Source: Mantamonas sphyraenae STR306 (Eukaryota > Protista > CRuMs). From it: a DNA stretch of 64,000 nucleotides. How positions within the stretch are numbered: position 1 is the first letter of the stretch; every line of letters starts with the position of its first letter. Below, in pieces: positions 21,707 to 43,100 of the stretch. The stretch covers positions 124,001 to 188,000 of the forward strand of contig JAPMXV010000070.1 in the NCBI GenBank assembly GCA_026936335.1. The letters are read 5' to 3'. Position numbers and translations under genes: made by a program. Under the pieces are notes generated by a model. That model was given only the letters and a program-made list of their open reading frames with translations, searched no databases and was not told where the DNA came from.

Positions 21707-22159
21707 CCGCACTCGTCGACGACGAGCGTGAACTTGAGCATGATTCCACGAACAGTGCATGTCAGAGTGGGAAGGGCGGTGGGTGTGTGGGCGGCCTGGA
21801 GGATATCCTGGAGTGGGGGGGGGGAGGGGGAGGGGGTTGGAGTGTGAGGAGAGGGAAGGGAAGGGGGGGTAGGGTGGAGGAGTGGGAGGACGTACGGTGG
21901 CTTGCAGGTGCTTCCACTTGAGGGTTCCAGGGTTGCCAATGTCATGGACGAATGCTTTTCTGTCCAGAGACTGCTGCAGGGTGCATTCGTATGCTGCTGC
22001 GCCGCAGAAGAGGCGGCCTTGGACGGGGTCTGAGAAGCGGAGCTCAAGGCGGATGCCAGGGGTGTCATGGGAGGGGATGAGGCCTGACCACATGGCGAGG
22101 TGGCCGTCGTAGTATTGGCGGTGGATGGGCGTCTGGAGGTGTGGTTGGTGGGTGGACAT
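20641..22159 (-). CDS. Head-domain + coiled coil + about 7 ankyrin repeats (inverted, diverged paralog of the cassette genes)
   Basis: MSTHQPHL..YYDGHLAMWSG..GIRLELRFSDPVQGRLFCGAAAYEC. Intron 21808-21895 (GTACGT...CAG) lies at the equivalent position to that in the 23167 gene; then RIQRLEECVLEQ and ankyrins. 3' end overlaps the 17634 gene by 14 bp. Confidence 0.85.
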
Positions 22160-22202
22160 TCTTTGGTGGAGAAAGAGAAAGGGGAGATTCACGTTTCATC
22201 GC

Positions 22203-22844
22203 TCAATCGCGTGCTCGCACCACCTCCATCAGCATCCCCACCTGCTCCTCCAGCTGGTTCACACGTCGTTGCAGCATCCACACACTCTGCGACGTCTCCT
22301 CACACCCACTCAGCTTCACCTCCTCCAGTCGCACACGCACAAACCCATACACAAAGCTCATCCTCCCGTCCTTCATCTCCACATCCCTCACCTGCTGCTC
22401 CTTCACATCCACCAGATCCAGATCCAGATCACAGGAGCCAGTGAAGAACTTGCCTCCCACACGTCCCACCACACGTGTGGCACCCTCAGCTGTGGTGCTG
22501 GTCATGGTGATGAGCATGTGGTCGTCACCCAGTCGACCCTGGATGTCCACCTTGGTGGCGGGAGTGTCCTCGAGTGTCGCATCGTCGTCGTCGTCGTCGT
22601 CGTCAGTGTGGTGGTGGTTGTTGTTGGGGATGGTCGAGTGGGAGTGCTTCACACTGGTGCTGGTGCTGGTGCCGCGGGTGGAGGAAGAGGAGGAGGAAGA
22701 GGAAGGTTGATGGGTGGTGTCACTGGTGTGGGTGGCGATGGCAGTGGTGTCTGCGTCGTGGGGAGTGGTGGTCTGGTCATCATCGTGGGTGTTGTTGTCG
22801 TTGTCCTTGTTGCTGGTCTTGGTGGTTGCAGTCATGGTGAACAT
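22203..22844 (-). CDS. Cassette partner protein copy 1 (Thr/Ser/Asp-rich N-terminus, beta-rich domain, C-terminal coiled coil)
   Basis: MFTMTATTKT...KVDIQGRLGDDHML...RVRLEEVKLSGCEETSQSVWMLQRRVNQLEEQVGMLMEVVRARD; the ORF is intact in 3 of 4 copies. Confidence 0.65.
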   Translation of the reverse strand: MFTMTATTKTSNKDNDNNTHDDDQTTTPHDADTTAIATHTSDTTHQPSSSSSSSSTRGTSTSTSVKHSHSTIPNNNHHHTDDDDDDDDATLEDTPATKVDIQGRLGDDHMLITMTSTTAEGATRVVGRVGGKFFTGSCDLDLDLVDVKEQQVRDVEMKDGRMSFVYGFVRVRLEEVKLSGCEETSQSVWMLQRRVNQLEEQVGMLMEVVRARD

Positions 22845-22948
22845 CGTCCGTGTTTGGTGTGTGTGTTGGTTGTTGGTTGATTGGTTGGGTGGGTGGGCGC
22901 AGTGGGGTTGGGGTGTGCTTTTGTACTGACCCATGGACTGGTGAAGGG

Positions 22949-22965
22949 TGAACTTTGAATGTTCA
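22949..22965. promoter_or_regulatory. TGAAC-N7-GTTCA palindrome in the divergent intergenic region (also at 30718, 37288, 40870)
   Basis: tgaac-tttgaat-gttca lies between the two divergent ATGs; copy 4 has 7-bp arms (ggtgaac...gttcacc). Function is inferred only. Confidence 0.4.
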
Positions 22966-23166
22966 GCTGGTGAGAGAGTGCGGCATTCCCACCCCCACCA
23001 GCCATCCGTGTGTCCATGGCACCCACACACCACGTCATCATCTGTGTGCATCCCATCACATCCCACTACCAGTGCATCCATGTTCATCCCAAGGTCATGG
23101 CACAAATACAAACGGGAACCGGGATGCGCCTGCTCAGCAACAACAAACAACCCAGCAGCAGAAACC

Positions 23167-26100
23167 ATGTCCACACAAGAACAGCTGCTGACAAGCATCT
23201 ACAGAGAGCACTACGATGGACACCTGGCAGTGTGGATGGGAGTGGTGGAGAACAAGGAGGAGGAGCTGGCACAGAGGGTGGGAGTGCGTTTGGAGCTGCG
23301 GTTTGGTGAGAAGGTGACGGGGAGGCTGTTCTGCGGGACGGCAGCGTACGAGTGTGAGCTGCAACAGGGACTGGATGGGAAGGCGTATGTGCGCGGTGTG
23401 GGGGACCCGGGAGTGATGAAGTGGAAGAAGATGGGAATGGAGGTAAGTGGAGAGGGGGAGAAAGGGAAGAGGATGAGCTGGAAGAGTGCGGCAACACAGG
23501 AAGAGAGGGTGGACATGGAATGGGATGGGGAAGGGGGAGTGACTGACACATGATTGCAGGAGGTGATGGAGAAGGCATGCAGGGCAGGGGAGTTGGATGG
23601 GATGGTGTGCACGGTGCGTGGGGTGATGCTGCGGTTCAGGATCTGGGAGGACGGGTGTGGAGAGGTGGCGTTGGAGAAGAGCATGGAGGCAGCAAGGACA
23701 GTGGCAGTGCGTGTGCAACTGGCAGGGATGGATGAGCATGTGCAACAGCTGGAGGAGTGTGTGATGGAACAGGATGTGGCTGAGCTGGCACGGGGTGGAC
23801 GATGGAAGAGTGTGGCAGTGGCACTGGAGTTGATGAGACGAGATAGAGTGCATGAGGGTGTGACGGGAGAAGCAGTGGAGGAGGCGGTTGCGTTGGGGAG
23901 CAAGGCAGGGAAGGAAGAAGTGGCAGAAGCTGGGTTAGAGGTGTTGGAGCTGATGATGGCAGATGGGAGGATGGAAGGGATTGGGTGGAGAGGAGAGAAA
24001 GGAGAGACACTAATGATGGTGGCTGCGGGGAATGGATGGACGAGGACGGTGGAGCAGCTGGTTGGGCTTGGTGAAGATGTGAATGCTGCCAGGGAAGACG
24101 GAAGGACAGCGTTAATGAGTGCTACGTCGAACGCGCACACGGAGACAGTGGGCAAGCTGATTGAGTGTGGAGGCGATGCGAATGCTGCTCAGGAGGACGG
24201 GTGGACTGCACTGATGATTGCAGCACAGAAGGGACACACGGAGACAGTGGGCAAGCTGGTTGAGTGTGGAGGAGATGTGAATGCTGCTAGGGAGGACGGG
24301 TGGACTGCACTGATGAGTGCAGCATCGAAGGGACACACGGAGACTGTGGGCAAGCTGATTGAGTGTGGAGGGAATGTGAATGCTGCTAGGGAGGACGGGT
24401 GGACTGCACTGATGAGTGCAGCATCGAAGGGACACACGGAGACAGTGGGCAAGCTGATTGAGTGTGGAGGAGATGTGACCGCAACGAAAGCGAACGGGGC
24501 GACTGCACTGTTGATTGCGGCAGAGAACGGACACACGGAGACAGTGGGCAAGCTGATTGAGTGTGGAGGAGATGTGAATGCTGCTCAGGAGGACGAGTGG
24601 ACTGCACTGATGGTTGCAGCACAGAACGGACACACAGAGACAGTGGGCAAGCTGATTGAGTGTGGAGGAGATGTGAATGCTGCTCAGGAGGACGGCTGGA
24701 CTGCACTGATGACTGCAGCATGGAACGGACACACGGAGACAGTGTGCAAGCTGGTTGAGTATGGAGGCGATGCGACCGCAAAGAAAACGAACGGGGCGAC
24801 TGCACTGTTGATTGCGGCAGAGAACGGACACACGGAGACAGTGGGCAAGTTGATTGAGTGTGGAGGCGATGTGAATGCTGCTCAGGAGGACGAGTGGACT
24901 GCACTGATGGTTGCAGCACAGAACGGACACACAGAGACAGTGGGCAAGCTGATTGAGTGTGGAGGAGATGTGAATGCTGCTCAGGAGGACGGGTGGACTG
25001 CACTGATGAGTGCAGCATCGAAGGGACACACGGAGACAGTGGGCAAGCTGATTGAGTGTGGAGGAGATGTGAATGCTGCGAAGGAGAACGGGTGGACTGC
25101 ACTGATGAGTGCAGCATCGAAGGGACACACGGAGACAGTGGGCAAGCTGATTGAGTGTGGAGGAGATGTGACCGCAACGAAAACGAACGGGGCGACTGCA
25201 CTGTTGATTGCGGCAGAGAACGGACACACGGAGACAGTGGGCAAGCTGATTGAGTGTGGAGGCGATGTGAATGCTGCTCAGGAGGACGAGTGGACTGCAC
25301 TGATGGTTGCAGCAGAGAACGGACACACGGAGACAGTGGGCAAGCTGATTGAGTGTGGAGGCGATGTGAATGCTGCTCAGGAGGACGAGTGGACTGCACT
25401 GATGGTTGCAGCACAGAACGGACACACAGAGACAGTGGGCAAGCTGATTGAGTGTGGAGGAGATGTGAATGCTGCTCAGGAGGACGGGTGGACTGCACTG
25501 ATGAGTGCAGCATCGAAGGGACACACGGAGACAGTGGGCAAGCTGATTGAGTGTGGAGGAGATGTGAATGCTGCGAAGGAGAACGGGTGGACTGCACTGA
25601 TGAGTGCAGCATCGAAGGGACACACGGAGACAGTGGGCAAGCTGATTGAGTGTGGAGGAGATGTGACCGCAACGAAAACGAACGGGGCGACTGCACTGTT
25701 GATTGCGGCAGAGAACGGACACACGGAGACAGTGAGCAAGCTGATTGAGTGTGGAGGCGATGTGAATGCTGCTCAGGAGGACGGGTGGACTGCACTGATG
25801 ATTGCAGCACAGAACGGACACACGGAGACTGTGGGCAGGTTGATTGAGTGTGGAGGAGATGTGAATGCTGCGAAGGAGAACGGGTGGACTGCACTGATGA
25901 TTGCAGCACAGAACGGACACACGGAGACTGTGGGCAGGTTGATTGAGTGTGGAGGAGATGTGAATGCTGCTAGGGAGGACGGCTGGACTGCACTGATGAC
26001 TGCAGCATGGAACGGACACACGGAGACAGTGTGCAAGCTGATTGAGTGTGGAGGAGATGTGAATGCTGCTCAGGAGGACGGCTGGACTGCACTGATGACT

Positions 26101-27732
26101 GCAGCATGGAACGGACACACGGAGACAGTGTGCAAGCTGATTGGGTATGGAGGCGATGTGACCGCAACGAAAACGAACGGGGCGACTGCACTGTTGATTG
26201 CGGCAGAGAACGGACACTCGGAGACAGTGGGCAAGCTGATTGAGTGTGGAGGCGATGTGAATGCTGCGAAGGAGAACGGGTGGACTGCACTGATGAGTGC
26301 AGCACAGAAGGGACACACGGAGACAGTGGGCAAGCTGGTTGAGTGTGGAGGCGATGTGAATGCTGCTCAGGAGGACGAGTGGACTGCACTGATGGTTGCA
26401 GCATGGAACGGACACACGGAGACAGTGGGCAAGCTGGTTGAGTATGGAGGCGATGCGACCGCAAAGAAAACGAACGGGGCGACTGCACTGTTGATTGCGG
26501 CAGAGAACGGACACACGGAGACAGTGGGCAAGCTGGTTGAGTGTGGAGGCGATGTGAATGCTGCTCAGGAGGACGAGTGGACTGCACTGATGGTTGCAGC
26601 ACAGAACGGACACACAGAGACAGTGAGCAAGCTGATTGAGTGTGGAGGAGATGTGAAAGCTGCTCAGGAGGACGGGTGGACTGCACTGATGAGTGCAGCA
26701 TCGAAGGGACACACGGAGACAGTGGGCAAGCTGATTGAGTGTGGAGGCGATGTGAATGCTGCGAAGGAGAACGGGTGGACTGCACTGATGAGTGCAGCAC
26801 AGAACGGACACACGGAGACAGTGGGCAAGCTGGTTGAGTGTGGAGGCGATGTGAATGCTGCTCAGGAGGACGAGTGGACTGCACTGATGGTTGCAGCACA
26901 GAACGGACACACGGAGACAGTGAGCAAGCTGATTGAGTGTGGAGGAGATGTGAAAGCTGCTCAGGAGGACGGGTGGACTGCACTGATGAGTGCAGCATCG
27001 AAGGGACACACGGAGACAGTGGGCAAGCTGATTGAGTGTGGAGGCGATGTGAATGCTGCGAAGGAGAACGGGTGGACTGCACTGATGAGTGCAGCACAGA
27101 ACGGACACACGGAGACAGTGGGCAAGCTGGTTGAGTGTGGAGGCGATGTGAATGCTGCTCAGGAGGACGAGTGGACTGCACTGATGGTTGCAGCACAGAA
27201 CGGACACACGGAGACAGTGAGCAAGCTGATTGAGTGTGGAGGAGATGTGAAAGCTGCTCAGGAGGACGGGTGGACTGCACTGATGGTTGCAGCATCGAAG
27301 GGACACACAGAGACAGTGGGCAAGCTGATTGAGTGTGGGGGCGATGTGACCGCAACGAAAAAGAACGGGGCGACTGCACTGATGATTGCGGCACAGAACG
27401 GACACACGGAGACAGTGAGCAAGCTGATTGAGTGTGGCGGCGATGTGAATGCTGCCATGATGAAGGGGAAGACTGCACTGATGATGGCAGCACAGCACGG
27501 ACACATGGAGACAGTGGGCAAACTGATTGAGGGTGGTACCGATGTGAATGCTGCAATGATGAACGGCTGGACTGCACTCATGATTGCTGTCCGTCACAAC
27601 CATCCCGACATTGCCCAACTCCTTCTCTCCAACGGCGCCGACCCATCCGTCACCAACACCGCCGGCGAAACTGCCCACACCATCGCCGTCAAGTACTCCA
27701 ACAACGACCTCGCCGCCCTCCTCTCACAATAA
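23167..27732 (+). CDS. Cassette ankyrin gene copy 1: head domain + coiled coil + about 38 ankyrin repeats
   Basis: ATG 23167 (MSTQEQLL); intron 23443-23559 (GTAAGT...CTGAC...CAG, phase 0); exon 2 corresponds to ORF 23554..27732. Confidence 0.92.
24076..27580 (+). repeat. 99-bp coding tandem repeat (ankyrin modules) with very high internal nucleotide identity
   Basis: Near-invariant core ggacacacggagacagtgggcaagctgattgagtgtggagg(a/c)gatgtg recurs every 99 bp. Confidence 0.97.
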
Positions 27733-27807
27733 ACCCACCCCCTCTCCTCCTCTTCATCATTCAACATCATCTCCACCTTCATTCCTCCTTCCCTCCCCAC
27801 CCCCTCC

Positions 27808-28509
27808 TCACAACAACGCCATCTCCCCCTCCTTCACCACCCCCTTCCTCCACTCCTCAAACCCTCCCAAATACAACCTCTTCACCAGCCCATCAAACAC
27901 CTCCTCCCTCTCCATCCCCTCCTCAATCTCCCTCTGGAACTCAATGCACTCTCCAAACTCCAAATCCCCCGTCTCCCCCACATACTCATCACTGTCGTCA
28001 TCAAAGAACCGTTCCAGCACCTCCATCACCTTCTCATGATGCCTCGCGTGCCCCACCCCCAGATCCTCCCCTGCCTCCACCGCACTCATCATCACCACAA
28101 ACATCTTGCACGCCGCCCCGCTCAGCCCACTGTCCTCCGCACTCCTCCTCAAGTACCTCCTCTTCATCCACCCGCTCCACACTCCACGCACATGGCTGTC
28201 CCGCATCACCGTCTCCACGTCCTTCACACGCTCCTCCACAGGCACACTCGACACCTGCTGGCCCATGTACTCTGCAAACCGTTCAAACACCACCCCGTAC
28301 ACCTCCACCATCGCCTCGTCAAACACAAACTCGCTTGCCTGGCCCTCCCCCACTGCACGCATCAGTGCTGCCTGCACTCCGTACTCCACTCCCAGATACT
28401 TCTCGCTCTCGTCCTCGTCAAAGTACGTCTCTACAATCTCGCTCATCTCCCTCGCCGCCTCCTCCTCGCTCATCTCTGCACTTGCCACTCCACGCTGCAG
28501 CGCACGCAT
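27808..28509 (-). other. Near-identical duplicate of the giant receptor's 3' end (43101-43804); intact 233-aa ORF with RGS-like sequence
   Basis: MRALQRGVASAEM...GVVKEGEMALL matches the C-terminus of ORF 43101..60173 except for two residues. Confidence 0.9.
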
Positions 28510-28658
28510 CCTGTTCCGAACGGTCCATTGCGATGCGATGGGTGGATTGCACGCTCCATGACATCACAGGGCACGGCAGGATGAGGAAGAGAGGACATGT
28601 GAAGAGCTGATTGTCAGCGATGATGGTGCCACTGAAGTCGTACACACATCCATGGTCT

Positions 28659-29693
28659 TCATTGCTGGCGCATCTTGTCCATGTGTTTGTACGCGTTGGA
28701 GCGGTTGCGGAAGGGTTCGCCGCACAGACACTGGCATGGCTCGCGTGCCTTCTTGCCCCGTCTTTGATCCGCATCCGACAGCTTGATTCCATGCACCACT
28801 CCATCCCTGTCCCTCACCCTTGTGTCCACTGTGTACTTCACCGGCCTGTTCCTGCCTCCGCGCTGTGCTCGTTCCTTCATGCTCTTCACATGCTTCTCCA
28901 GATTGCACTTCTTCTTGTACGTCTTTCCACACTGGCAATGGTACTTCCATCCACCCTCCACACACCTCCTCTTGCCTGCAAACCCATGCTCGTCCCGTTC
29001 CTGCTTGTTGCTGACCCCGTCGAACAGCTGCCGTGATGCTCTTGACGAGGATGCTGATGACGATGATGACATCGAAGAGGGTTGTGACTCGCACACATCG
29101 CCGTACTCATGATGGGACTCCTCTGGTGTCCTGTCCACGTCCGCCTCTTCCATCTCGAACGTCACATCGCTTTTGGGCGACCCACACGACTCCAGCTCCA
29201 TGCTGTCCATGTCTGGGATGACTTCCACGCTATCCTCCACTTCGTTGCAGCTGCTGTCCAATGTCCATCCACCATACAGATGGAACTGCTCTGGTGTCAC
29301 ATCCACATCCAGCACACCCATCTCGAACACATCCTCGCTCGTGAGCCAGTCCCACGGCACCATGCTCTCGGCGTCCATACCATCCTCCTCATCACCATCC
29401 CAATCTCCATCAGCGTCGTCCTCATTGCTGCTCCCTTCCTCATCCTCATCCCATGGACTTCCTCCAGGAGAAACGGGTATGCCACCCCTTGTCCCCAAGC
29501 CACCCATGGTGTGACACTCGTCGTCACTGGACAACATCCCTCCATCCTCCTCCCTCTCACACATGCCTCCCATCCATCTGTCATCAACTTCTTCCGAGTT
29601 GTACCAATCGCAGCCCCCGTCGTCCTCGTCGAGCCCGTCGAGCGGAACCATGTCCAGTGCTGTCCTCAGCTTCCTCGTGCGTGCTCCGTACAT
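28659..29693 (-). CDS. Acidic protein with two C-terminal atypical C2H2-like zinc fingers, copy 1
   Basis: YHCQCGKTYKKKCNLEKHVK and CQCLCGEPFRNRSNAYKHM; long D/E-rich N-terminus; paralog at 35181..36218. Confidence 0.7.
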   Translation of the reverse strand: MYGARTRKLRTALDMVPLDGLDEDDGGCDWYNSEEVDDRWMGGMCEREEDGGMLSSDDECHTMGGLGTRGGIPVSPGGSPWDEDEEGSSNEDDADGDWDGDEEDGMDAESMVPWDWLTSEDVFEMGVLDVDVTPEQFHLYGGWTLDSSCNEVEDSVEVIPDMDSMELESCGSPKSDVTFEMEEADVDRTPEESHHEYGDVCESQPSSMSSSSSASSSRASRQLFDGVSNKQERDEHGFAGKRRCVEGGWKYHCQCGKTYKKKCNLEKHVKSMKERAQRGGRNRPVKYTVDTRVRDRDGVVHGIKLSDADQRRGKKAREPCQCLCGEPFRNRSNAYKHMDKMRQQ

Positions 29694-29790
29694 GGTTGTT
29701 GGTAATGTCTTCTGCTACGTTGTCACCAAGTAAAGTTGGCCACATGCACGCACCCCAACTCGGCTCCACCTGAAACCTTGGTGTCAAAGT

Positions 29791-29841
29791 TGAACTTTCA
29801 AGGTTCGGCCCGCTGCTGAAAAGTGAACTTTCAATGTTCAC
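29791..29841. promoter_or_regulatory. Two tandem (T)GAAC-N7-GTTC(A) palindromes upstream of the zinc-finger gene (repeated at 36315-36365)
   Basis: tgaac-tttcaag-gttcg at 29791 and gtgaac-tttcaat-gttcac at 29823, about 100-150 bp upstream of the ATG at 29693. Confidence 0.4.
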
Positions 29842-30016
29842 CGCGACACGTTTCCGCAAACTCACCCCGACGCACACAGGACATTCTTCACACGTCACAC
29901 ACGACACCAATGCATGTCACAAGATGAAGATGACATGCTACTGGACACAGATGGATGATGGTTGGACTGGCATGGCTTGTGCATTCCCTTCCTCACCCGC
30001 ACACTCCCACACACAC

Positions 30017-30611
30017 TCAATCACGTGCTTGCACCACCTCCATCAGCATCCCCACCTGCTCTTCAAGCTGGTTCACACGTCGTTGCAGCATCCACACACT
30101 CTGCGACGTCTCCTCACACCCACTCAGCTTCACCTCCTCCAGTCGCACACGCACAAACCCATACACAAAGCTCATCCTCCCGTCCTTCATCTCCACATCC
30201 CTCACCTGCTGCTCCTTCACATCCACCAGATCCAGATCCAGATCACAGGAGCCGGTGAAGAACTTGCCTCCCACACGTCCCACCACACGTGTGGCACCCT
30301 CAGCTGTGCTGGATGTCCACCTTGGTGGCTGGAGTGTCCTCGAGTGTCGCATCGTCGTCGTCGTCGTCGTCAGTGTGGTGGTGGTGGTGGTTGGGGATGG
30401 TCGAGTGGGAGTGCTTCACACTGGTGCTGGTGCTGGTGCCGCGGGTGGAGGAAGAGGAGGAGGAAGAGGAAGGTTGATGGGTGGTGTCACTGGTGTGGGT
30501 GGCGATGGCAGTGGTGTCTGCGTCGTGGGGAGTGGTGGACTGGTCGTCATCGTGGGTGTTGTTGTCGTTGTCCTTGTTGCTGGTCTTGGTGGTTGCAGTC
30601 ATGGTGAACAT
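30017..30611 (-). pseudogene. Cassette partner copy 2, frameshifted by a 41-bp deletion
   Basis: Relative to copy 3, tcatggtgatgagcatgtggtcgtcacccagtcgaccctgg is missing at ~30311 between CTGG microhomologies, splitting the ORF in two. Confidence 0.8.
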
Positions 30612-30935
30612 CGTCCGTGTTGGTTGGTTGTTGGTTGTTGGTTGATTGGTTGGGTGGGTGGGTGGGCGCAGTGGGGTTGGGGTGTGCTTTTGTACTGACC
30701 CATGGACTGGTGAAGGGTGAACTTTGAATGTTCAGCTGGGGAGAGAGTGCGGCACCCCCACCCCCACCAGCCATCCGTGTGTCCATGGCACCCACACACC
30801 ACGTCATCATCTGTGTGCATCCCATCACATCCCACTACCAGTGCATCCATGTTCATCCCAAGGTCATGGCACAAATACAAACGGGAACCGGGATGCGCCT
30901 GCTCAGCAACAACAAACAACCCAGCAGCAGAAACC

Positions 30936-32333
30936 ATGTCCACACAAGAGCAGCTGTTGACAAGCATCTACAGAGAGCACTACGATGGACACCTGGCAGT
31001 GTGGATGGGAGTGGTGGAGAACAAGGACGAGGAGGAGGAGCTGGCACAGAGGGTGGGAGTGCGTTTGGAGCTGCGGTTTGGAGAGAAAGTGACGGGGAGG
31101 CTGTTCTGCGGGACGGCAGCGTACGAGTGTGAGCTGCAACAGGGACTGGATGGGAAGGCGTATGTGCGGGGTGTGGGGGACCCGGGAGTGATGAAGTGGA
31201 AGAGGATGGGTGTGGAGGTAAGTGGTGAGGGAGGGAAGAGGAGGAGCTGGAAGAGTGCGGCAACACTGGAAGAGAGGGTGGACATGGAATGGGATGGGGA
31301 AGGGGGAGTGACTGACACATGATTGCAGGAGGTGATGGAGAAGGCATGCAGGGCAGGGGAGGTGGATGGAATGGTGTGCACGGTGCGTGGGGTGATGCTG
31401 CGGTTCAGGATCTGGGAGGACGGGTGTGGAGAGGTGGCGTTGGAGAAGAGCATGGAGGCAGCAAGGACAGTGGCAGTGCGTGTGCAACTGGCAGGGATGG
31501 ATGAACGTGTGCAGCAGCTGGAGGAGTGTGTGATGGAACAGGATGTGGTTGAGCTGGCACGGGGTGGACGATGGAAGAGTGTGGGGGTGGCACTGGAGTT
31601 GATGAGACGAGATGGAGTGCACGAGGGTGTGACTGGAGAAGCAGTGGGGGAGGTGGTTGCGTTGGGGAGCAAGGCAGGGAAGGAAGAAGTGGCAGAAGCT
31701 GGGTTGTTGGTGTTGGAGCAGATGATGAAAGATGGGAGGATGGAAAGGATTGGGTGGAGAGGAGACAAAGGGGAGACACTGATGATGGTAGCAGCTGGGA
31801 ACGGATGGACGAGGACGGTGGAGCAGCTGGTTGTGCTTGGTGAAGATGTGAATGCTGCCAGGGAAGATGGAAGGACAGCGTTAATGAGTGCTACGTCGAA
31901 CGCGCACCCGGAGACAGTGGGCAAGCTGATTGAGTGTGGTGGCGATGTGAATGCCACGGAGAAGAACACATGGACTGCACTAATGATTGGAGCATGGAAC
32001 GGACACACGGAGACAGTGAGCAAGCTGATTGAGTGTCGAGCCGATGTGAATGCTGCCATGAAGGACAAGTGTACTGCACTCATGATTGCAGCAGAAAGAG
32101 GACACACAGAGATTGTGGGCAAGCTCATTGAGTGTGGAGGCGATGTGAATGCTGCAAAGGATAGCGGATGGACTGCACTGATGTTTGCTGCCCGTCTCAA
32201 GCAACCCGACGTTGCCCAACTCCTTCTCTCCAACGGCGCCGACCCATCCCTAACCAACACCGCCGGCGAAACTGCCCACACCATCGCCCTCAACAACTCC
32301 AACGACGACCTCGCCGCACTCCTCGAACAATAA
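30936..32333 (+). CDS. Cassette ankyrin gene copy 2: head + coiled coil + about 6 ankyrin repeats
   Basis: ATG 30936; intron 31218-31328; exon 2 corresponds to ORF 31323..32333. Confidence 0.9.
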
Positions 32334-32407
32334 TCACAACAACCCATCCCCAATACATTCCGTTTTTCCTTCCTCCCTCAATTCCTATCCACCGTCATTC
32401 CTCCCTT

Positions 32408-32590
32408 CTCGCCCATCTCTGCACTCGCCACTCCACGCTGCAGCGCACGCATCCTCCTCCACGCCTCCACCTTCACCTCCTTCATCGGTGCCAACGTCGC
32501 ACCCAGCACCCTCTCCACATGCTCATCTGCAAACTCAAAGAACTTTGCTCGCAGTCGCTGCTCTCGCAGCACTTCCATCGGCCTGCGGAT
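32408..32590 (-). pseudogene. Fragment of the giant receptor gene (copy of 43758-43940)
   Basis: Near-exact match ctcgcccatctctgcactcgcc...gcctgcggat; encodes MEVLREQRLRAKFFEFADEHVE... Confidence 0.9.
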
Positions 32591-32641
32591 CCATGTCCTT
32601 CCTGGCCACCAGCAGCTTCAGCTCCTTCATCTCCTTCGTTC

Positions 32642-34105: not shown

Positions 34106-34204
34106 CTCTCCACTGCGTGCTTTGTTGTTGCGTTGGTGGCAAGAGTGCGGGAGGGAAACCAACGAGACGAAAAGGGCACTGGGCACACACGTCAGAGGCA
34201 CGCC

Positions 34205-34969
34205 ATGAGCAGGGCGGGCACCACGAAGGCAAAGAAACCGAACAGACTCAAGTGGGAACTTCTGTGTAGGAACAGGGATGATCGGGGACACACGTGCTGG
34301 GAGCAGATCGACTTGGCAAGTGACCCACGCGACGTGGACATCTGCAACGTGTGTGTGAATCAATGTGCAGCACTGCAATCCAAGCAACGTTGCAGGGGCC
34401 ACCTGTGGTCATGTAGCAAGCACACCAATGCCCCTTGTCGACGCTATCCACGGGACTTTGGACGGGGGTGTCACGAGTTGAACCATGCGCCGCTTTGCCG
34501 ACGGTGCGAGAGGTATCGTGGCATGGTACCAGGTACACGAGAGGAACTGGAGACTGAAGGCGGGGCTGAGCATGCACGTGTGCAGGCAGAGAGAGCAGAG
34601 GAGGTGCAACAGTTGTTTGCACGGCAGAGGGAGCTGCTTGAGGGCGGGCAGCTAGCAGAGGAGGGGATGTCAAACACATCAAACAGCCGAAAGAGAGAAC
34701 GGGCGGAGCAGCAGGAGATGGATTTATTGTATGTCAACATGCAAAGCGAGTCGGCGCTGGAGTTACTGCGAACGGAAGACGGGAGCGCAAGTGGATTCTC
34801 CCCAGCTGCGATGTCGGAGATGGACGAGGACATTTCGACGACTTTTGGACAGGATGGCATGGATGTGGAGGGCGAAGGACAATCGTCCACCAGCAGCAGC
34901 AGCTGGAGGGAGGAGGAGGAAGAGGAGGAGGAGAGTGCGGCAAAACGTCAACGCCCTTCCCGAGGGTAG
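34205..34969 (+). CDS. Cys/His-rich putative zinc-binding nuclear protein
   Basis: CNVCVNQC, CRGH..CSKH..C, CHELNH..LCRRC motifs; basic NLS-like RKRER and AKRQRP; acidic tail. Confidence 0.6.
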   Translation: MSRAGTTKAKKPNRLKWELLCRNRDDRGHTCWEQIDLASDPRDVDICNVCVNQCAALQSKQRCRGHLWSCSKHTNAPCRRYPRDFGRGCHELNHAPLCRRCERYRGMVPGTREELETEGGAEHARVQAERAEEVQQLFARQRELLEGGQLAEEGMSNTSNSRKRERAEQQEMDLLYVNMQSESALELLRTEDGSASGFSPAAMSEMDEDISTTFGQDGMDVEGEGQSSTSSSSWREEEEEEEESAAKRQRPSRG

Positions 34970-35180
34970 GCCAGAGTGTGGGGCGGTGGGTTGTTTGGTG
35001 GAGAGTGTTGTGTGGAGAGCAATGGCAGTGACGGGTGTTGCAAGGGTCCATTGCGATGCGATGGGTGGAGTGCGCTCCATGAACAACACAAGGCACGGTT
35101 GAATGAGGAAGAGAGGACATGTGAACAGATGATTGTCAGCGATGATGGTGCCACTGAAGTCATACACACATCCATGGTCT

Positions 35181-36218
35181 TCATTGCTGGCGCATCTTGC
35201 CCATGTGTTTGTACGCATTGGAGCGGTTGGAGAAGTGTTCACCACACAGACACTGGCATGGCTCGCGTGCCTTCTTGCCCCGTCTTTGATCTGCATCCGA
35301 CAGCTTGATTCCATGCACCACTCCATCCCTGTCCCTCACCCTTGTGTCCACTGTGTACCTCACCGGCCTGTTCCTGCCCCTGCGTTGTGCTCGTTCCTCC
35401 ACCCTCTTCACATGATTCTCCAGATGGTATTTCTTCTTGTACGTCTTTCCACACTGGCAATGGTACCTCCATCCACCCTCCACACACCTCTTCTTGCCTT
35501 CAAACCCATGCTCGTCCTGTTCCTGCTTGTTGCTGACCCCGTCGAACAGCTGCCGTGATGCTCTTGACGAGGATGCTGATAATGACGATGATGACATCGA
35601 AGAGGGTTGTGACTCGTACACATCGCCATACTCATGATGGGACTCCTCTGGTGTCCTGTCCACGTCCGCCTCTTCCATCTCGAACGTCACATCGCTTTTG
35701 GGCGACCCACACGACTCCAGTTCCATGCTGTCCATGTCTGGGATGACTTCCACGCTATCCTCCACTTCGTTGCAGCTGCTGTCAAATGTCCATCCACCAT
35801 ACAGACGGAGCTGCTCTGGTGTCATATCCACATCCAGCACACCCATCTCGAACACATCCTCGCTCGTGAGCCAGTCCCACGGCACCATGCTCTCGGCGTC
35901 CATACCATCCTCCTCATCCCCATCCCAATCGTCATCAGCGTCGTCCTCATTGCTGCTCCCTTCCTCATCCTCATCCCATGGACATCCTCCAGGAGAAACG
36001 GGAATGCCAGCCCTTGTCCCCAAGCCACCCATGGTGTGACACTCGTCGTCACTGGACAACATCCCTGCATCCTCCTCCCTCTCACACATGCCTCCCATCC
36101 ACCTGTCATCCACTTCCTCAGAGTTGTACCAATCGTAGCCCCCGTCGTCCTCGTCGAGTCCGTCAAGCGGAACCATGTCCAGTGCTGTCCTCAGCTTCCT
36201 CGTGCGTGCTCCGTACAT
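35181..36218 (-). CDS. Acidic zinc-finger protein, copy 2
   Basis: Close paralog of 28659..29693; ORF intact, with a 3-bp in-frame indel. Confidence 0.7.
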   Translation of the reverse strand: MYGARTRKLRTALDMVPLDGLDEDDGGYDWYNSEEVDDRWMGGMCEREEDAGMLSSDDECHTMGGLGTRAGIPVSPGGCPWDEDEEGSSNEDDADDDWDGDEEDGMDAESMVPWDWLTSEDVFEMGVLDVDMTPEQLRLYGGWTFDSSCNEVEDSVEVIPDMDSMELESCGSPKSDVTFEMEEADVDRTPEESHHEYGDVYESQPSSMSSSSLSASSSRASRQLFDGVSNKQEQDEHGFEGKKRCVEGGWRYHCQCGKTYKKKYHLENHVKRVEERAQRRGRNRPVRYTVDTRVRDRDGVVHGIKLSDADQRRGKKAREPCQCLCGEHFSNRSNAYKHMGKMRQQ

Positions 36219-36550
36219 GGTTGTTGGTAATGTCTTCTGCTACGTTGCCACCAAGTAAAGTTGGACACATGCACGCACCCCAACTCGGCTCTACTTGACC
36301 CTTGGTGTCAAAGTTGAACTTTCAAGGTTCGGCCCGCTGCTGAAAAGTGAACTTTCAATGTTCACCGCGACACGTTTCCGCAAACTCACCCCAACGCACA
36401 CAGGACATGCTTCACACGCCACACACGACACCAATGCATGTCACAAGATGCAGATGACATGCTACTGGACACAGATGGATGATGGTTGGACTGGCATGGC
36501 TTGTGCATTCCCTTCCTCACCCACACACTCCCACACACTCCCACACACAC

Positions 36551-37189
36551 TCAATCACGTGCTCGCACCACCTCCATCAGCATCCCCACCTGCTCTTCAA
36601 GCTGGTTCACACGTCGTTGCAGCATCCACACACTCTGCGACGTCTCCTCACACCCACTCAGCTTCACCTCCTCCAGTCGCACACGCACAAACCCATACAC
36701 AAAGCTCATCCTCCCGTCCTTCATCTCCACACCCCTCACCTGCTGCTCCTTCACATCCACCAGATCCAGATCCAGATCACAGGAGCCAGTGAAGAACTTG
36801 CCTCCCACACGTCCCACCACACGTGTGGCACCCTCAGCTGTGCTGGTCATGGTGATGAGCATGTGGTCGTCACCCAGTCGACCCTGGATGTCCACCTTGG
36901 TGGCTGGAGTGTCCTCGAGTGTCGCATCGTCGTCGTCGTCGTCGTCGTCAGTGTGGTGGTGGTGGTGGTTGGGGATGGTCGAGTGGGAGTGCTTCACACT
37001 GGTGCTGGTGCTGGTGCCGCGGGTGGAGGAAGAGGAGGAGGAAGAGGAAGGTTGATGGGTGGTGTCACTGGTGTGGGTGGCGATGGCAGTGGTGTCTGCG
37101 TCGTGGGGAGTGGTGGACTGGTCATCATCGTGGGTGTTGTTGTCGTTGTCCTTGTTGCTGGTCTTGGTGGTTGCAGTCATGGTGAACAT
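36551..37189 (-). CDS. Cassette partner protein copy 3
   Basis: Intact ORF nearly identical to 22203..22844. Confidence 0.65.
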   Translation of the reverse strand: MFTMTATTKTSNKDNDNNTHDDDQSTTPHDADTTAIATHTSDTTHQPSSSSSSSSTRGTSTSTSVKHSHSTIPNHHHHHTDDDDDDDDATLEDTPATKVDIQGRLGDDHMLITMTSTAEGATRVVGRVGGKFFTGSCDLDLDLVDVKEQQVRGVEMKDGRMSFVYGFVRVRLEEVKLSGCEETSQSVWMLQRRVNQLEEQVGMLMEVVRARD

Positions 37190-37503
37190 CGTCCGTGTTG
37201 GTTGTTGGTTGTTGGTTGATTGGTTGGGTGGGTGGGGGCAGTGGGGTTGGGGTGTGCTTTTGTACTGACCCATGGACTGGTGAAGGGTGAACTTTGAATG
37301 TTCAGCTGGTGAGAGAGTGCGGCACCTCACCCCCACCAGCCATCCGTGTGTCCATGGCACCCACACACCACGTCATCATCTGTGTGCATCCCATCCCATC
37401 CCACTCCCAGTGCATCCATTTTCATCCCAAGGCATGGCACAAATACATACGGGAACCGGGATGCGCCTGCTCAGCAACAACAAACAACCCAGCAGCAGAA
37501 ACC

Positions 37504-39708
37504 ATGTCCACACAAGAACAGCTGCTGACAAGCATCTACAGAGAGCACTATGATGGACACCTGGCAGTGTGGATGGGAGTGGTGGAGAACAACGAGGAGG
37601 AGGAGGAGCTGGCACAGAGGGTGGGAGTGCGTTTGGAGCTGCGGTTTGGAGAGAAGGTGACGGGGAGGCTGTTCTGCGGGACGGCAGCGTACGAGTGTGA
37701 GCTGCAACAGGGACTGGATGGGAAGGCGTATGTGCGGGGTGTGGGGGACCCGGGAGTGATGAAGTGGAAGAAGATGGGAGTGGAGGTAAGTGGAAGAGGA
37801 GGAGCTGGAAGAGTGCGGCAACACAGGAAGAGAGGGTGGACATGGAATGGGATGGGGGGGAGTGGCTGACACATGGTGCAGGAGGTGATGGAGAAGGCAT
37901 GCAGGGCAGGGGAGGTGGATGGGATGGTGTGCACGGTGCGTGGGGTGATGCTGCGGTTCAGGATCTGGGAGGACGGGTGTGGAGAGGTGGCATTGGAGAA
38001 GAGCATGGAGGCAGCAAGGACAGTGGCAGTGCGTGTGCAACTGGCAGACTCGCTTCAGAAGCAGGTGGAGGTCACCACGGTGATGCGTGATGTGTTGTGT
38101 GAAGCGAACGTTGTCCAAGCTGCAAAGGCTGGGCTCTGGACGCTTGTGGAAACACTTCTGCATGGTTTTTCGTCCCTTGGATTGGTTGAAGTGCCTCGAC
38201 GGACATCTGACGTGCCGCATTCCGATCTGATGGAAGTGTACTGTGCCGCATGCCGATGCGGCAAAACTGCGGTTGTTCACCTCCCGAACGAGAAGCTGTA
38301 CCAGTATCCGAAGGGGATCGACGTGCAACACGCCACATACGGGGGACAGGATGTGACTTCTGTTGTGCGTGATCTTGTCGAAGAAGCAATGGCGCAGGGA
38401 GAGCTCCGCCTGGTGATCAAAAAGGGTGGCTACAACTCGCTCTTTGGTGATGGCAGGATGGGCAAGGTGAAGCAGCTGCGGATTTGGTGGGAACGGGACT
38501 CTGTGCTCGAAGCAGGAGAGTGGAACGAGGACACACAGTGCACGTTGTTGCTGCGCGAGTGCCTGCGCACAGACTCGAGCAACATGACGCCGGTGATGCA
38601 CGCTTGTGCCGGTGGGCACATGGAAACGCTGAACGTGTTGCTGGAAGACAGGGCGCACCACGACACGCTGGGTGCCCGGTTCCCAGAGGAAGGAGGCACG
38701 GCGCTGCATGTGGCGAGCGAAGCAGACTTTGCCGACGGTGTCATCAGGCTCATGGACACGGGCGTGTTTGACTTGGAAGCACGCAACGATCGAGATATGA
38801 CGCCGCTGATGTTGGCTACGAGGTGTGGAAACGCAAAGACAGTGCAAGCGCTGCTCCAATTGGGTGCCGCGGTGGACGCCAAGGAATCCTCAAAGGGCCG
38901 AACTGCACTTTTCGACGCATGCGCACTGGGGAAGGCCGACGTCGTGCGTGTTCTGTTGGAGAACGAGGCCGATGCAAACGCGAAGGAGGAACGATCCCAG
39001 TGGACGCCGATGTTGTCGGCGGTCAAGAGGGACAACGTGGAATGTGCCAAGCTGCTGATCGAATACGGTGCAGATATCAACGCTATGAATGCCCAAGGGC
39101 GAACTCCGTTGCACGTGGCTGTGGAAAAGGGCAGTGTGCACAGTCTCTGCGTACTTCTTGCCCTTGGAGCAGACACGAGCGTGACCAGAGGCGGGAAAAC
39201 GATTTGGGAGTATTGTTCATCGCATGAGCAATTTGAGTGCTATCGTGCGTTGATGACGGCACGGGAAAACGATGGGGCGGTGGACGAAGATGTGCTGTTG
39301 GTCGCAGCTGGCCGGCTGGTGGACAATCCAGGGAAAGAGCTGCCTCATTGGGAGGGCTTGTACAGACTGAAAGCATGTAATGGGATGTTCCTTGCCTTGG
39401 ATGAGGACGGAGAAAACGAGGAGGGTAAGGCGCGGACGAACAAGGGGGAGTGTGTGCTGGAGCTGGTGGAGACACACGTGCGCAAAGTTGCCATTGGCCT
39501 TCCCGGAGTGGGAAAGTACCTGGACTGGAATGGGCTGTGTTTCAGCGAACCACGGGCGATCGGACGCCAATGGCAGGTTATTGAGCTTGTGGACAACAAG
39601 GTGGCGTTTCGCTCCGCTGAGGGCAAGTTCCTGGTGAAGGATGTGGACGGGCAACTACTGCTCACGTCATTCCTCGGAGAGGGTGGAGAGTGGGAGTGTG
39701 TGCCATGA
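37504..39708 (+). CDS. Cassette ankyrin gene copy 3: same head, different body (lectin-like insert, about 7 divergent ankyrins, C-terminal fascin-like beta-trefoil)
   Basis: Intron 37786-37881. Identity to the other copies ends at ~38047; then HATYGGQDVT..NSLFGD..GKVKQLRI, ankyrins, and YRLKACNGMFLALD / VAFRSAEGKFLVKD motifs. Confidence 0.85.
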
Positions 39709-39850
39709 CAAAGGAATGGATCAATGTGTGGATGCTGGTGTCCTTGAAGATGTCTAGGGTAAACAACGCTCATACCCCACAGACTTCTCATGTGACTGAG
39801 ATCAACGTTGTTCTTAGTTGCCAGCACACATAAAGGCACCGTTGGTGCAT

Positions 39851-39989
39851 CATGGGCAGGGCAAGGGGGAATCGATAGCACAAAACAATAGAGAGGGAAG
39901 TAGACTCATGTCTATCGTCCTCCAACCTGTAGCAATTGAACACGGCAAAGGTGCCCTTGCTCACCGTCGGGTGCAGGTTGACCATGATG
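39851..39989 (-). pseudogene. Degenerate fragment of the giant receptor TM region (about 44718-44887)
   Basis: catgggcagggcaaggg and tcgtcctccaacctgtagcaattgaacacggcaaag(g/a)tgcccttgctcaccgtcgggtgc are shared; encodes HPTVSKGTFAVFNCYRLEDD. Confidence 0.85.
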
Positions 39990-40132
39990 AGCAACGGACA
40001 GTGACACTGAATGAAATGCAGGTGCCCAATGTGACGATGACATGCCAAGCCCAACCATGAAGACTGATGGATGATGGTTGGACTGGCATGGCTTGTGCAT
40101 TCCCATCCTCACCCACACACTCCCACACACAC

Positions 40133-40771
40133 TCAATCACGTGCTCCCACCACCTCCATCAGCATCCCCACCTGCTCTTCAAGCTGGTTCACACGTCGTT
40201 GCAGCATCCACACACTCTGCGACGTCTCCTCACACCCACTCAGCTTCACCTCCTCCAGTCGCACACGCACAAACCCATACACAAAGCTCATCCTCCCGTC
40301 CTTCATCTCCACATCCCTCACCTGCTGCTCCTTCACATCCACCAGATCCAGATCCAGATCACAGGAGCCAGTGAAGAACTTGCCTCCCACACGTCCCACC
40401 ACACGTGTGGCACCCTCAGCTGTGCTGGTCATGGTGATGAGCATGTGGTCGTCACCCAGTCGACCCTGGATATCCACCTTGGTGGCTGGAGTGTCCTCGA
40501 GTGTGGCGTCGTCGTCGTCGTCTTCGTCAGTGTGGTGGTGGTGGTGGTTGGGGATGGTCGAGTGGGAGTGCTTCACACTGGTGCTGGTGCTGGTGCTGGT
40601 GCTGCGGATGGAAGAGGAGGAGGAAGAGGAAGGTTGATGGGTGGTGTCACTGGTGTGAGTGGCGATGGCAGTGGTGTCTGCGTCGTGGGGAGTGGTGGAC
40701 TGGTCATCATCGTGGGTGTTGTTGTCGTTGTCCTTGTTGCTGGTCTTGGTGGTTGCAGTCATGGTGAACAT
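40133..40771 (-). CDS. Cassette partner protein copy 4
   Basis: Intact ORF nearly identical to copies 1 and 3. Confidence 0.65.
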   Translation of the reverse strand: MFTMTATTKTSNKDNDNNTHDDDQSTTPHDADTTAIATHTSDTTHQPSSSSSSSIRSTSTSTSTSVKHSHSTIPNHHHHHTDEDDDDDATLEDTPATKVDIQGRLGDDHMLITMTSTAEGATRVVGRVGGKFFTGSCDLDLDLVDVKEQQVRDVEMKDGRMSFVYGFVRVRLEEVKLSGCEETSQSVWMLQRRVNQLEEQVGMLMEVVGARD

Positions 40772-41086
40772 CGTCCGTGTTGGTTGTTGGTTGTTGGTTG
40801 ATTGGTTGGGTGGGTGGGGGCAGTGGGGTTGGGGTGTGCTTTTGTACTGACCCATGGACTGGTGAAGGGTGAACTTTGAATGTTCACCTGGTGAGAGAGT
40901 GCGGCACCCCACCCCCACCAGCCATCCGTGTGTCCATGGCACCCACACACCTCGTCATCATCTGTGTGCATCCCATCCCATCCCACTCCCAGCGCATCCA
41001 TGTTCATCCCAAGGTCATGGCACAAATACAACCGGGAACCGGGATGCGCCTGCTCAGCAACAACAAACAACCCAGCAGCAGAAACC

Positions 41087-42983
41087 ATGTCCACACAAGA
41101 ACAGCTGCTGACAAGCATCTACAGAGAGCACTACGATGGACACCTGGCAGTGTGGATGGGAGTGGTGGAGAACAAGGAGGAGGAGGAGGAGGAGCTGGCA
41201 CAGAGGGTGGGAGTGCGTTTGGAGCTGCGGTTTGGAGAGAAGGTCACGGGGAGGCTGTTCTGCGGGACGGCAGCGTACGAGTGTGAGCTGCAACAGGGAC
41301 TGGATGGCAAGGCGTATGTGCGGGGTGTGGGGGACCCGGGAGTGATGAAGTGGAAGAGGATGGGTGTGGAGGTAAGTGGTGAGGGAGGGAAGAGGAGGAG
41401 CTGGAAGAGTGCGGCAACACTGGAAGAGAGGGTGGACATGGAATGGGATGGGAAAAGGGGGAGTGGCTGACACATGATTGCAGGAGGTGATGGAGAAGGC
41501 ATGCAGGGCAGGGGAGGTGGATGGGATGGTGTGCACGGTGCGTGGGGTGATGCTGCGGTTCAGGGTGTGGGAGGACGGGTGTGGAGAGGTGGCATTGGAG
41601 AAGAGCATGGAGGCAGCAAGGACAGTGGCAGTGCGAGTGCAACTGGCAGGGATGGATGACCGTGTGCAGCAGCTGGAGGAGTGTGTGATGGAACAGGATG
41701 TGGCTGAGCTTGCACGGGGTGGACGATGGAAGAGTGTGGCAGTGGCACTGGAGTTGATGAGGCGAGATGGTGTGCATGAGGGTGTGACTGGAGAAGCAGT
41801 GGTGGAGGCGGTTGCGTTGGGGAGCAAGGCAGGGAAGGAAGAAGTGGCAGAAGCTGGGTTAGAGGTGTTGGAGCTGATGGTTGCAGATGGGAGGATGGAA
41901 AGGATTAAGTGGAGAGGAGACAAAGGAGAGACACTGATGATAGTGACAGCGAGGAATGGGTGGACGAGGAGGGTGGAGCAGCTGGTTGTGCTTGGTGAAG
42001 ATGTGAATGATGCGAAGGAGGACGGGTGGACTGCACTGATGAGTGCTGCAGCTCGCGGACACCAAGAAACAGTGGGCAAGCTGATTGAGTGTGGAGGCGA
42101 TGTGAATGCTGCCAATGAGAACGGAACGACCTCACTGATGAGTGCAGCACAGAGGGGACACACGGAGACAGTGGGCAAGCTGATTGAGTGTGGAGGCGAT
42201 GTGAATGCTGCTAACCGGCATGGGTGGACTGTTCTGATGAGTGCAGCACAGAACGGACACACAGAGACAGTGGGCAAGCTGATCGAGTGTGGAGGCGATG
42301 TGAATGCTGCCAATGAGAACGGAACGACCTTACTGATGAGTGCAGCACAGAGGGGACACACGGAGACAGTGGGCAAGCTGATTGAGTGTGGAGGGAATGT
42401 GAACGCTGCTAACCGGCATGGGTGGACTGTTCTGATGAGTGCAGCACAGAACGGACACACAGAGACAGTGGGCAAGCTGATTGAGTGTGGAGGCGATGTG
42501 AATGCTGCCAATGAGAACGGAACGACCTCACTGATGAGTGCAGCACAGAGGGGACACACGGAGACAGTGGGCAAGCTGATTGAGTGTGGAGGCGATGTGA
42601 ATGCTGCTAACCGGCATGGGTGGACTGTTTTGATGAATGCAGCAGAGCACGGACACACGGAGACAGTGGGCAAGCTGATTGATTGTGGAGGCGATGTGAA
42701 TGCTGCCAATGAGAACGGGACGACCGCGCTGATGATTGCAGCAAAGAACGGACACACGGAGACAGTGGGCAAGCTGATTGAGTGTGGAGGCAATGTGAAT
42801 GCCGCCAATCGGCACGGGTGGACTGCACTGATGAGTGCTGTCCGTTACAACCATCCCGACATTGTCCAACTCCTTCTCTCCAGTGGCGCCGACTCATCCC
42901 TCACCAACACCTCCGGCGAAACTGCCCACGCCATCGCCCTCAAGTACTCCAACAACGACCTGGCCGCCCTTCTCGAACAATAA
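41087..42983 (+). CDS. Cassette ankyrin gene copy 4: head + coiled coil + about 11 ankyrin repeats (alternating NENG/NRHG dimer)
   Basis: ATG 41087; intron 41372-41483; exon 2 corresponds to ORF 41478..42983. Confidence 0.92.
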
Positions 42984-43100
42984 GCCCGACCCCAATCCCC
43001 CCCCTCCCTCTCCCATCCTCTTCATCAATCAACATCCATCTCCACCTTCATTCCTCCTTTCCTCCCTCCTTCCCTCCTTCCTTACCTCCCCACCCCCTCC

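Follow-up and report, generated by a model that had tools for sequence, protein, structure and literature searches.

Here we describe a cluster of four closely similar gene cassettes in the protist Mantamonas sphyraenae STR306, found in a 64,000-nucleotide (nt) stretch of its genome (assembly GCA_026936335.1, contig JAPMXV010000070.1, positions 124,001 to 188,000 of the forward strand; hereafter the window, numbered from its first letter). Mantamonads belong to CRuMs, close to the base of Amorphea, and we know of almost no cell biology for them. In each cassette, a short minus-strand open reading frame (ORF), here called the partner, stands head to head with a plus-strand gene that encodes an N-terminal domain, the head, followed by an array of ankyrin repeats. 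The M. sphyraenae assembly was made with FALCON from PacBio (112x) and Illumina reads and comprises 25.06 Mb in 78 primary contigs, with a guanine-plus-cytosine (GC) content of 59.19%, and the organism is diploid (PMC10492846); the genome-wide searches reported below covered 25,061,354 bases in 78 contigs.

Self-BLAST of the window bore out the original prediction, made from the letters alone, of a near-identical block of about 1.5 kb at four sites: the segment 22202-23725 recurs at 30016, 36550, and 40132 with 95-98% identity. The block contains the minus-strand ORF of 210 amino acids (aa), a spacer between the two start codons that measures 331 bp (about 320 bp had been claimed), exon 1 of the head-ankyrin gene, a GT..AG intron, and the first ~55 codons of exon 2. 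The cluster lies mid-contig on the 303-kb contig C70 and not at a chromosome end. Its genes are arranged as follows.

22203-22835, minus strand: partner copy A, 210 aa plus stop (ORF and translation)
22836-23166: divergent spacer of copy A, a candidate bidirectional promoter, with the palindrome TGAACTTTGAATGTTCA at 22949-22965
23167-27732, plus strand: head-ankyrin gene A; exon 1 23167-23442 (92 codons), intron 23443-23559 (117 nt), exon 2 23560-27732, which encodes the remaining head and a degenerate helical linker, then 36 regular 33-aa repeats flanked by an N-cap and a C-cap
30017-30611, minus strand: partner copy B; a 41-nt deletion, corresponding to 22498-22538 in A, breaks it into ORFs 30300-30611 and 30017-30352
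30936-32333, plus strand: head-ankyrin gene B; exon 1 30936-31217, intron 31218-31328 (111 nt), exon 2 31329-32333; ~6 ankyrin repeats
36551-37180, minus strand: partner copy C, intact
37504-39708, plus strand: head-ankyrin gene C, chimeric; exon 1 37504-37785, intron 37786-37881 (96 nt), exon 2 37882-39708
40133-40762, minus strand: partner copy D, intact
41087-42983, plus strand: head-ankyrin gene D; exon 1 41087-41371, intron 41372-41483 (112 nt), exon 2 41484-42983; ~11 ankyrins

The phase-0 GTAAGT..CAG intron models agree in all four head genes, the exon 2 frames are open, and the gene A intron holds an in-frame stop. Ankyrin-type Pfam matches (clan Ank: PF12796, PF00023) exceed the cut-offs in genes B, C, and D and in the paralogs E and G described below (E 1e-37 to 1e-158), and the 36 regular repeats of array A follow one another at an exact 33-aa spacing. 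The predicted counts of 38, 6, 7, and 11 repeats hold up, with 36 regular repeats plus two caps in A, ~6 in B, a block of ~6-7 in C, and ~11 in D. Exon 1 is under purifying selection, the ratio of non-synonymous to synonymous differences (pN/pS) among the copies being 0.06-0.19. Pairwise divergence within the block is distributed as follows.

Partner C-terminal half: 0.8-1.9%
Spacer: 2.1-3.7%
Exon 1: 1.4-2.9%
Intron: 1.8-4.5%
First 55 codons of exon 2: 1.2-3.0%

A four-way alignment of the block has 45-50 identical columns per 50, and to the left of 22202 the four-way identity falls at once to chance level. The left edge in copy A lies 1 nt beyond the partner stop codon, and at this edge copies B, C, and D have at least 70 bp more in common with one another than with copy A. 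On the right, the predicted end of the block at the start of exon 2 applies only to copy C, which diverges at the equivalent of 23725 (38047 in its own coordinates), whereas A, B, and D stay near-identical through the linker to ~23955.

Four public runs of one study cover the stretch, and contigs from them were compared over 20600-24600. In these short-read contigs the 16-nt deletion that marks the intron of copy C reappears, as does the 9-nt insertion peculiar to copy D; at 23725, run X3 contains the junction sequence specific to C, and at 22202 a second left flank is seen that resembles the flank of B, C, and D. We conclude from this that the copies are real. A fault of the assembly, such as the collapse or duplication of haplotypes, might be suspected in a diploid genome (PMC10492846) with such highly repetitive arrays, but it is scarcely credible as the source of four copies that differ by private substitutions, indels, flanks, and whole downstream genes, that reappear with their own variants in independent short-read contigs, and that belong to an assembly resting on 112x PacBio reads (PMC10492846). 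Contigs of another of these runs, X4, skip exactly 23443-23559 (GT..AG) and the 88-nt intron of paralog E, and the run leaves no depth on the spacer; X4 thus behaves as RNA. At 20600-22200, contigs from the DNA runs differ from the assembly by ~1.3% in the coding sequence of E and at 8 of 88 intron positions. Nine of the 14 differences in E fall on third codon positions, and these differences probably represent the second haplotype of the diploid.

The head is an orphan, strand-rich domain of ~150 aa, interrupted in six genes of the window by a phase-0 intron at one conserved position. A genome-wide search found it at six places, all within the window: the four cassette copies and two older paralogs, E and F. 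A third gene, G, probably belongs to the same family, judging by its marginal profile match and N-terminal motif, and a gene on another contig shares the ankyrin module.

20641-22159, minus strand: paralog E, with ~7 ankyrins and an identically placed intron of 88 nt; its exon 1 is 57-58% identical to that of A
9316-10762, plus strand: paralog F, with an identically placed intron of 61 nt and a head that is ~35% identical
17511-20654: gene G, a 1047-codon ankyrin ORF with a marginal head-profile match (E 0.36) and a similar N-terminal motif
Contig C54, 31619-34273, minus strand: leucine-rich-repeat (LRR)-ankyrin gene in which a middle domain separates ten RNI-type LRRs from ten ankyrins of the A/B/D type

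In contrast to the head, the partner was found at four places only, all in this window, by a genome-wide six-frame search, and that search gave no partner for E, F, or G. The expected co-occurrence therefore runs in one direction: genome-wide, the partner always accompanies a head, but the heads of the older E, F, and probably G are unpaired, so that pairing is not a property of the family. The divergent neighbor of G (16541-17260) was considered as a diverged partner and discarded for want of any similarity. The ankyrin array of paralog F loses frame near 10370, at a run of A's, and F is either a pseudogene or marked by a residual homopolymer error of the long-read assembly. The start codon of paralog E lies 43 bp downstream of the partner A stop on the same strand (22159-22205). 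Consequently, the E promoter must overlap the partner gene or E must be transcribed with it; X4 has no depth at 22208-22341, which leaves partner-to-E read-through unsupported.

Downstream of copy D, the minus strand carries a single 5,690-codon receptor-like ORF (43101-60173) with Filamin repeats, a GEX2-like Ig domain, a pentaxin/laminin-G domain, TIG domains, an ephrin-receptor-like module, and a TRP-like membrane region. Between B and C, two ORFs overlap, one of 586 codons at 32642-34402 on the minus strand and one of 474 codons at 32168-33592 on the plus strand, neither with a Pfam match. Parts of the giant receptor gene, and a second duplicated tract, recur among the cassettes.

27734-28512: region 3' of copy A, a duplicate of part of the giant receptor gene's 3' end, 95.5% identical to 43000-43805
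28659-29693, minus strand: zinc-finger-like (ZnF-like) ORF 1, an acidic orphan with two degenerate C2H2-like fingers; palindrome upstream at 29824-29840
35181-36218, minus strand: ZnF-like ORF 2, a duplicate of the first, within a 3-kb tract common to B and C

Successive pieces of the same 3' end also trail copy B (32404-32590, 98%) and copy C (39848-39993), with identities to 43000-44881 ranging from 86 to 98%. Such leftovers behind the copies are the signature of tandem segmental duplication, and copy D, which adjoins the intact receptor gene, is presumably the original. The segment 28512-30312, carrying the ZnF-like ORF, recurs at 35036-36846 (95%) as part of the 3-kb tract common to B and C (28512-31494 and 35036-38047, ~95-96%). 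An earlier suspicion that older flanks surround a homogenized block, raised by a match of 88.8%, was abandoned, the low figure being due to the ankyrins included in the match; without them, identity in the 3' flank reaches 95.5%, which indicates that the duplications themselves are recent.

Gene C adds evidence of another kind. Past the junction come a divergent linker, then a region without assignment, ~6-7 ankyrins, and a C-terminus that may be fascin-like, and this sequence is single-copy genome-wide yet homologous to the linker of paralog E (E 1e-5). The gene is thus an old family member whose 5' 1.5 kb was replaced, or 3 kb when the tract common to B and C is included, and such a replacement speaks directly for gene conversion of the 5' module or its spread by recombination. 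The locus is, in sum, a patchwork of segmental duplication and gene conversion. The predicted constant head stands to the extent that the 5' module is near-identical in all copies, but recent duplication and gene conversion explain this better than a designed division into constant and variable parts. As for the additional domains assigned to copy C, a beta-trefoil receives weak support from a two-stretch, sub-threshold Fascin match in the C-terminal 140 aa (39283-39705; E 0.0016), where an FRG1-like match also occurs; the 'lectin-like' part (38173-38562) found no support in any family search, and its only relative, at 33%, is on contig C35. The GC content is 56-59% at 22000-46000 and 60-64% in the DNA on both sides. 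A giant-virus or other foreign insertion, which the lower GC at 22-46 kb had brought to mind, was rejected on account of the spliceosomal introns, which are spliced in RNA, and of the older paralogs in the flanking higher-GC DNA.

Beyond the head and linker, the arrays have diverged much further than the sequence around them. Collinear alignments of A with D and of A with B show 93-98% identity over head and linker, or 95-98% for A with D taken singly, then 77-88% from the N-cap onward (~23956), and 95.5% in the 3' flank. This drop is not a matter of register alone, since even the best-matching repeats between arrays are only 85-92% identical (proportion of synonymous differences, pS, 0.16-0.19; pN/pS ~0.55). 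Each array is made of its own few repeat types, amplified as multi-repeat units, array D, for example, being built from its own two-repeat unit. Thus, no large combinatorial repertoire was seen, only a few repeat types amplified as higher-order units. Within array A, the variable repeat positions are 1-5, 10, 13, 14, and 33. These positions form the beta-turn and first-helix binding surface of ankyrin proteins and are the ones randomized in designed ankyrins. The arrays are accordingly variable on the binding surface, with a pN/pS in array A of 1.1-1.3 at surface positions versus 0.30-0.45 in the framework, figures that are descriptive because the repeats are not independent samples. For fungal NLRs, repeats count as highly conserved internally when those within a gene are >85% identical over a total of at least 100 aa (Dyrka et al. 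2014; PMC4986451), and array A is highly conserved by this definition: its 300-nt (100-aa) stretches are mutually 87-100% identical, many of them at 97-100%, although single repeats have a mean pairwise identity of 88% at the nucleotide and 80% at the amino acid level.

The same module also occurs outside the family. From window position ~23919 onward, the N-cap and array of the cassettes are ~80% identical in nucleotides to those of the LRR-ankyrin gene on contig C54, whose neighboring paralogs have the LRRs and the middle domain without this array; the fusion of the same N-cap and array to an LRR gene indicates that the ankyrin module has also been exchanged between families. This gene, the 3' end of whose ORF seems frameshifted, resembles the cassette genes in repeat type, N-cap, tandem paralogy, and fast turnover, and it differs from them in its RNI-type LRRs and other middle domain and in the lack of head, intron, and partner.

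The partner is the most debatable element of the cassette. Its N-terminal ~95 aa are of low complexity, with Ser/Thr/Asp/His runs, and this half is near-neutral (pN/pS 0.7-0.9). For the C-terminal ~115 aa, AlphaFold2 (AF2) predicts five or six strands followed by a 27-residue helix, at a mean predicted local distance difference test score (pLDDT) of 48, too poor a model for a fold search. In this half, A differs from C and from D by 4-5 synonymous to 1 non-synonymous changes (pN/pS 0.06-0.08), C differs from D by 1 synonymous and 2 non-synonymous changes (pN/pS 0.61), and 6 of 9 substitutions fall on third codon positions (binomial p ~0.04); on these few substitutions, selection seems to constrain the C-terminal half. 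In the RNA-like run X4, a 267-nt contig maps to partner A at 22368-22573, with a depth of ~5 versus ~21 for the head gene. No match to the partner was found in Pfam, in word-based searches with its C-terminal half, or in the Atlas, and exact-sequence look-ups of the partner and of the ZnF-like ORF were likewise without a match. Homology between partner and head, which seemed collinear by eye, is not claimed: BLASTP gave E-values of 0.23 and 81, and those from hhalign (0.12 and 0.086) are not significant. Complex prediction with three separate chains (exon 1 of the head, the stretch of exon 2 that belongs to the head, and the partner C-terminal half) gave a score of 0.01 and a mark of 0.34, a result that speaks neither for nor against an interaction.

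These properties could also be read as those of a chance ORF in G-rich DNA close to the promoter, on its C-rich strand, perhaps a low-level upstream antisense product, which appears constant only through the duplicated and converted tract that it occupies. Such an origin would suit an orphan without any relative, half of it low-complexity and neutral, with one copy frameshifted, a structure model of low confidence, and RNA-like coverage of ~5 versus 21 for the head gene; moreover, long overlapping ORFs are common on both strands of this GC-rich DNA, and conservation of the spacer and intron, neither of them coding, comes close to that of the ORF. We nevertheless find it doubtful in view of the excess of third-position and synonymous changes in the C-terminal half, the indels among the three intact copies, all of which are multiples of 3, the duplicated tract of copy A, which stops 1 nt past the stop codon, and the predicted ordered strands and amphipathic helix. 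The partner, on which an RNA-like contig also lies, is thus likely to be a real gene, probably a weakly expressed protein-coding one that is co-regulated with the head gene from a shared promoter.

The spacer, 96-98% identical among the copies, has one occurrence per cassette of the 17-nt palindrome TGAACTTTSAATGTTCA (S = G or C), which is also found ~130 bp upstream of each ZnF-like ORF.

Palindrome sites: 22949-22965, 29824-29840, 30718-30734, 36348-36364, 37288-37304, and 40870-40886

Both ZnF-like promoters have a second, degenerate copy of the palindrome ~35 bp upstream of the first. The six matches in the window compare with 0.1 expected and make up 6 of the 18 genome-wide matches to the general pattern. 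The palindrome is a plausible shared regulatory site. That the ZnF-like protein might bind it is speculation; ZnF-like ORF 1 has a weak zf-C2H2 match of 22.9 bits, under the cut-off. A heat-shock-element reading of the palindrome was dropped, as its nGAAn units are without canonical 5-bp phasing.

Searches and folds of the head were carried out exon by exon, on unjoined exons. An exhaustive HMMER search with an exon-1 profile against 1.84 billion representative proteins gave no match at E<=0.001, word-based searches with the head parts of D and of E were blank, and two Atlas feature searches yielded nothing usable. Pfam, consulted down to E 10, matched nothing in the partner or the head part, and the cassette genes returned just ankyrin-type matches and marginal sub-threshold ones. 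The AF2 model of exon 1, computed from six sequences (pLDDT 68), is a five-stranded, curved antiparallel meander; the beginning of exon 2 contributes a long helix and what are likely to be two more strands. Compared with the Atlas, this model matches SRPBCC/START-like clusters at template modeling (TM) scores of 0.54-0.62; in VIA it matches START-like lipid-transfer domains at Z 4.9-6.2, with porins and designed barrels equally high (up to 6.5), and Foldseek against the PDB gave no match at E<=0.001. The model is a weak lead that the head may be helix-grip/START-like, with a curved antiparallel sheet and a C-terminal helix. The SRPBCC/START/Bet v 1 helix-grip fold consists of a seven-stranded antiparallel sheet that wraps a long C-terminal helix; the head resembles it in the curved antiparallel sheet of exon 1 and the long helix of exon 2 and differs in having no sequence similarity and in missing the two short helices after strand 1, in a comparison that covers part of the head domain only.

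The absence of a NACHT or NB-ARC domain, anticipated from the sequence, was confirmed by Pfam on the cassette genes and by genome-wide searches with PF05729 and PF00931, which gave no match in C70:124001-188000 and at least 20 NB-ARC/NACHT candidates on other contigs. Without a central NACHT or NB-ARC P-loop NTPase, the cassette genes are not members of the NLR/STAND class, nor are the two genes a head-to-head NLR pair, neither having an NLR domain. They also do not form an amyloid pair of the HET-S/NWD2 type, in which the N-terminus of the receptor and the C-terminus of its neighboring partner have a short amyloid-forming motif in common: the sole stretch common to partner and head is V-x-Q-L-E-E-x-V, which is predicted to be helical and lies in the terminal helix of the partner and in a helix of the head, ~150 aa into the receptor and thus away from its N-terminus (hhalign E 0.086, at noise level).

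The closest described phenomenon is the highly internally conserved ANK, TPR, and WD repeats of fungal NLRs (PMC4986451). The cassettes share with these near-identical tandem repeats within a gene and repeat numbers that differ between paralogs, variable residues on the binding surface, reshuffling within and between genes, and varied N-terminal modules on one repeat type (here the orphan head and, on C54, the LRRs). They differ in having no NACHT/NB-ARC between head and repeats, a head without a recognized effector domain, and a setting, a CRuMs protist, with no known allorecognition or defense phenotype. The mode of repeat evolution is the same, but the NOD domain is absent, and the head-ankyrin gene is not an NLR. 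Plant head-to-head NLR pairs, such as RGA4/RGA5 and RRS1/RPS4, combine a sensor carrying an integrated domain with a helper. The cassette is like them in its divergent genes, short common spacer, duplication as a unit, and extra domains in copy C, and unlike them in containing no NLR gene, in having an orphan of 210 aa as the partner, and in the break of one partner copy.

One proposal is that the head-ankyrin protein is an intracellular sensor of foreign or altered targets and the partner its adaptor, inhibitor, or executor, which would make the system a NOD-less analog of paired NLRs. In its favor, the partner and head are divergently and, as regards the partner, exclusively linked and have a promoter element in common; array variation lies on the binding surface, and repeat numbers differ; the extra non-ankyrin domains of copy C are reminiscent of integrated domains; strong conservation among the repeats of a gene characterizes the ankyrin arrays of fungal NLRs (PMC4986451); and the V-x-Q-L-E-E-x-V stretch occurs in helices of both proteins (E 0.086). 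We nonetheless judge such a system quite unlikely. No NTPase, death-fold, TIR, HET, or other domain for signaling or execution is present, partner B has lost its frame next to an intact ankyrin gene, E, F, and G have no partners, there are only four copies with few repeat types, the shared helical motif is at noise level, and the NB-ARC/NACHT candidates elsewhere in the genome, at least 20 in number, could serve that role. There is an outside chance that the locus encodes, in this deep-branching CRuMs eukaryote, a NOD-less two-gene intracellular recognition module, in which an ankyrin array whose binding surface diversifies sits on a novel, possibly ligand-binding (helix-grip-like) head, the partner, co-regulated through the palindrome, acts as adaptor or inhibitor of the head, and gene conversion holds the 5' module uniform as the arrays diverge.

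We favor, at a probability of about 60%, a tandem gene family of recent origin that is restricted to this lineage and encodes cytosolic binding proteins with ankyrin arrays, together with a probably real orphan neighbor gene that was duplicated alongside. In such a family, copies would arise by tandem segmental duplication, and the 5' module would be spread or homogenized by gene conversion or unequal crossing-over; the arrays would evolve by amplification of higher-order repeat units within each gene, with relaxed or diversifying selection acting on their binding surface. Each gene would present a different binding surface on a common head, and the partner would be co-regulated with the head from the shared promoter. 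Several points weigh against this reading. Variation at surface positions is general in ankyrin proteins and is no proof of diversifying selection, and the inter-repeat comparisons are not independent, the repeats having been copied as blocks. The selection statistics of the partner come from just 7-9 substitutions (p ~0.04), the X4 contig on the partner carries no transcript strand, and the RNA status of X4, absent from its record, was deduced from two spliced contigs. The lead on the head fold is weak (pLDDT 68, exon 1 only; best Z 6.5; TM 0.54-0.62), and function is deduced from architecture alone.

As a case of how new binding proteins are made in a protist, the locus is clear-cut and can be dated: duplication and gene conversion keep an orphan domain and an orphan neighbor gene uniform, while the attached arrays are remodeled by repeat amplification and exchanged with an LRR-ankyrin family. 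If the cassettes do form a recognition system, a NOD module would be dispensable for sensors whose repeats are highly conserved internally; if they do not, the locus is still a useful case of de novo or orphan gene birth beside a bidirectional promoter.

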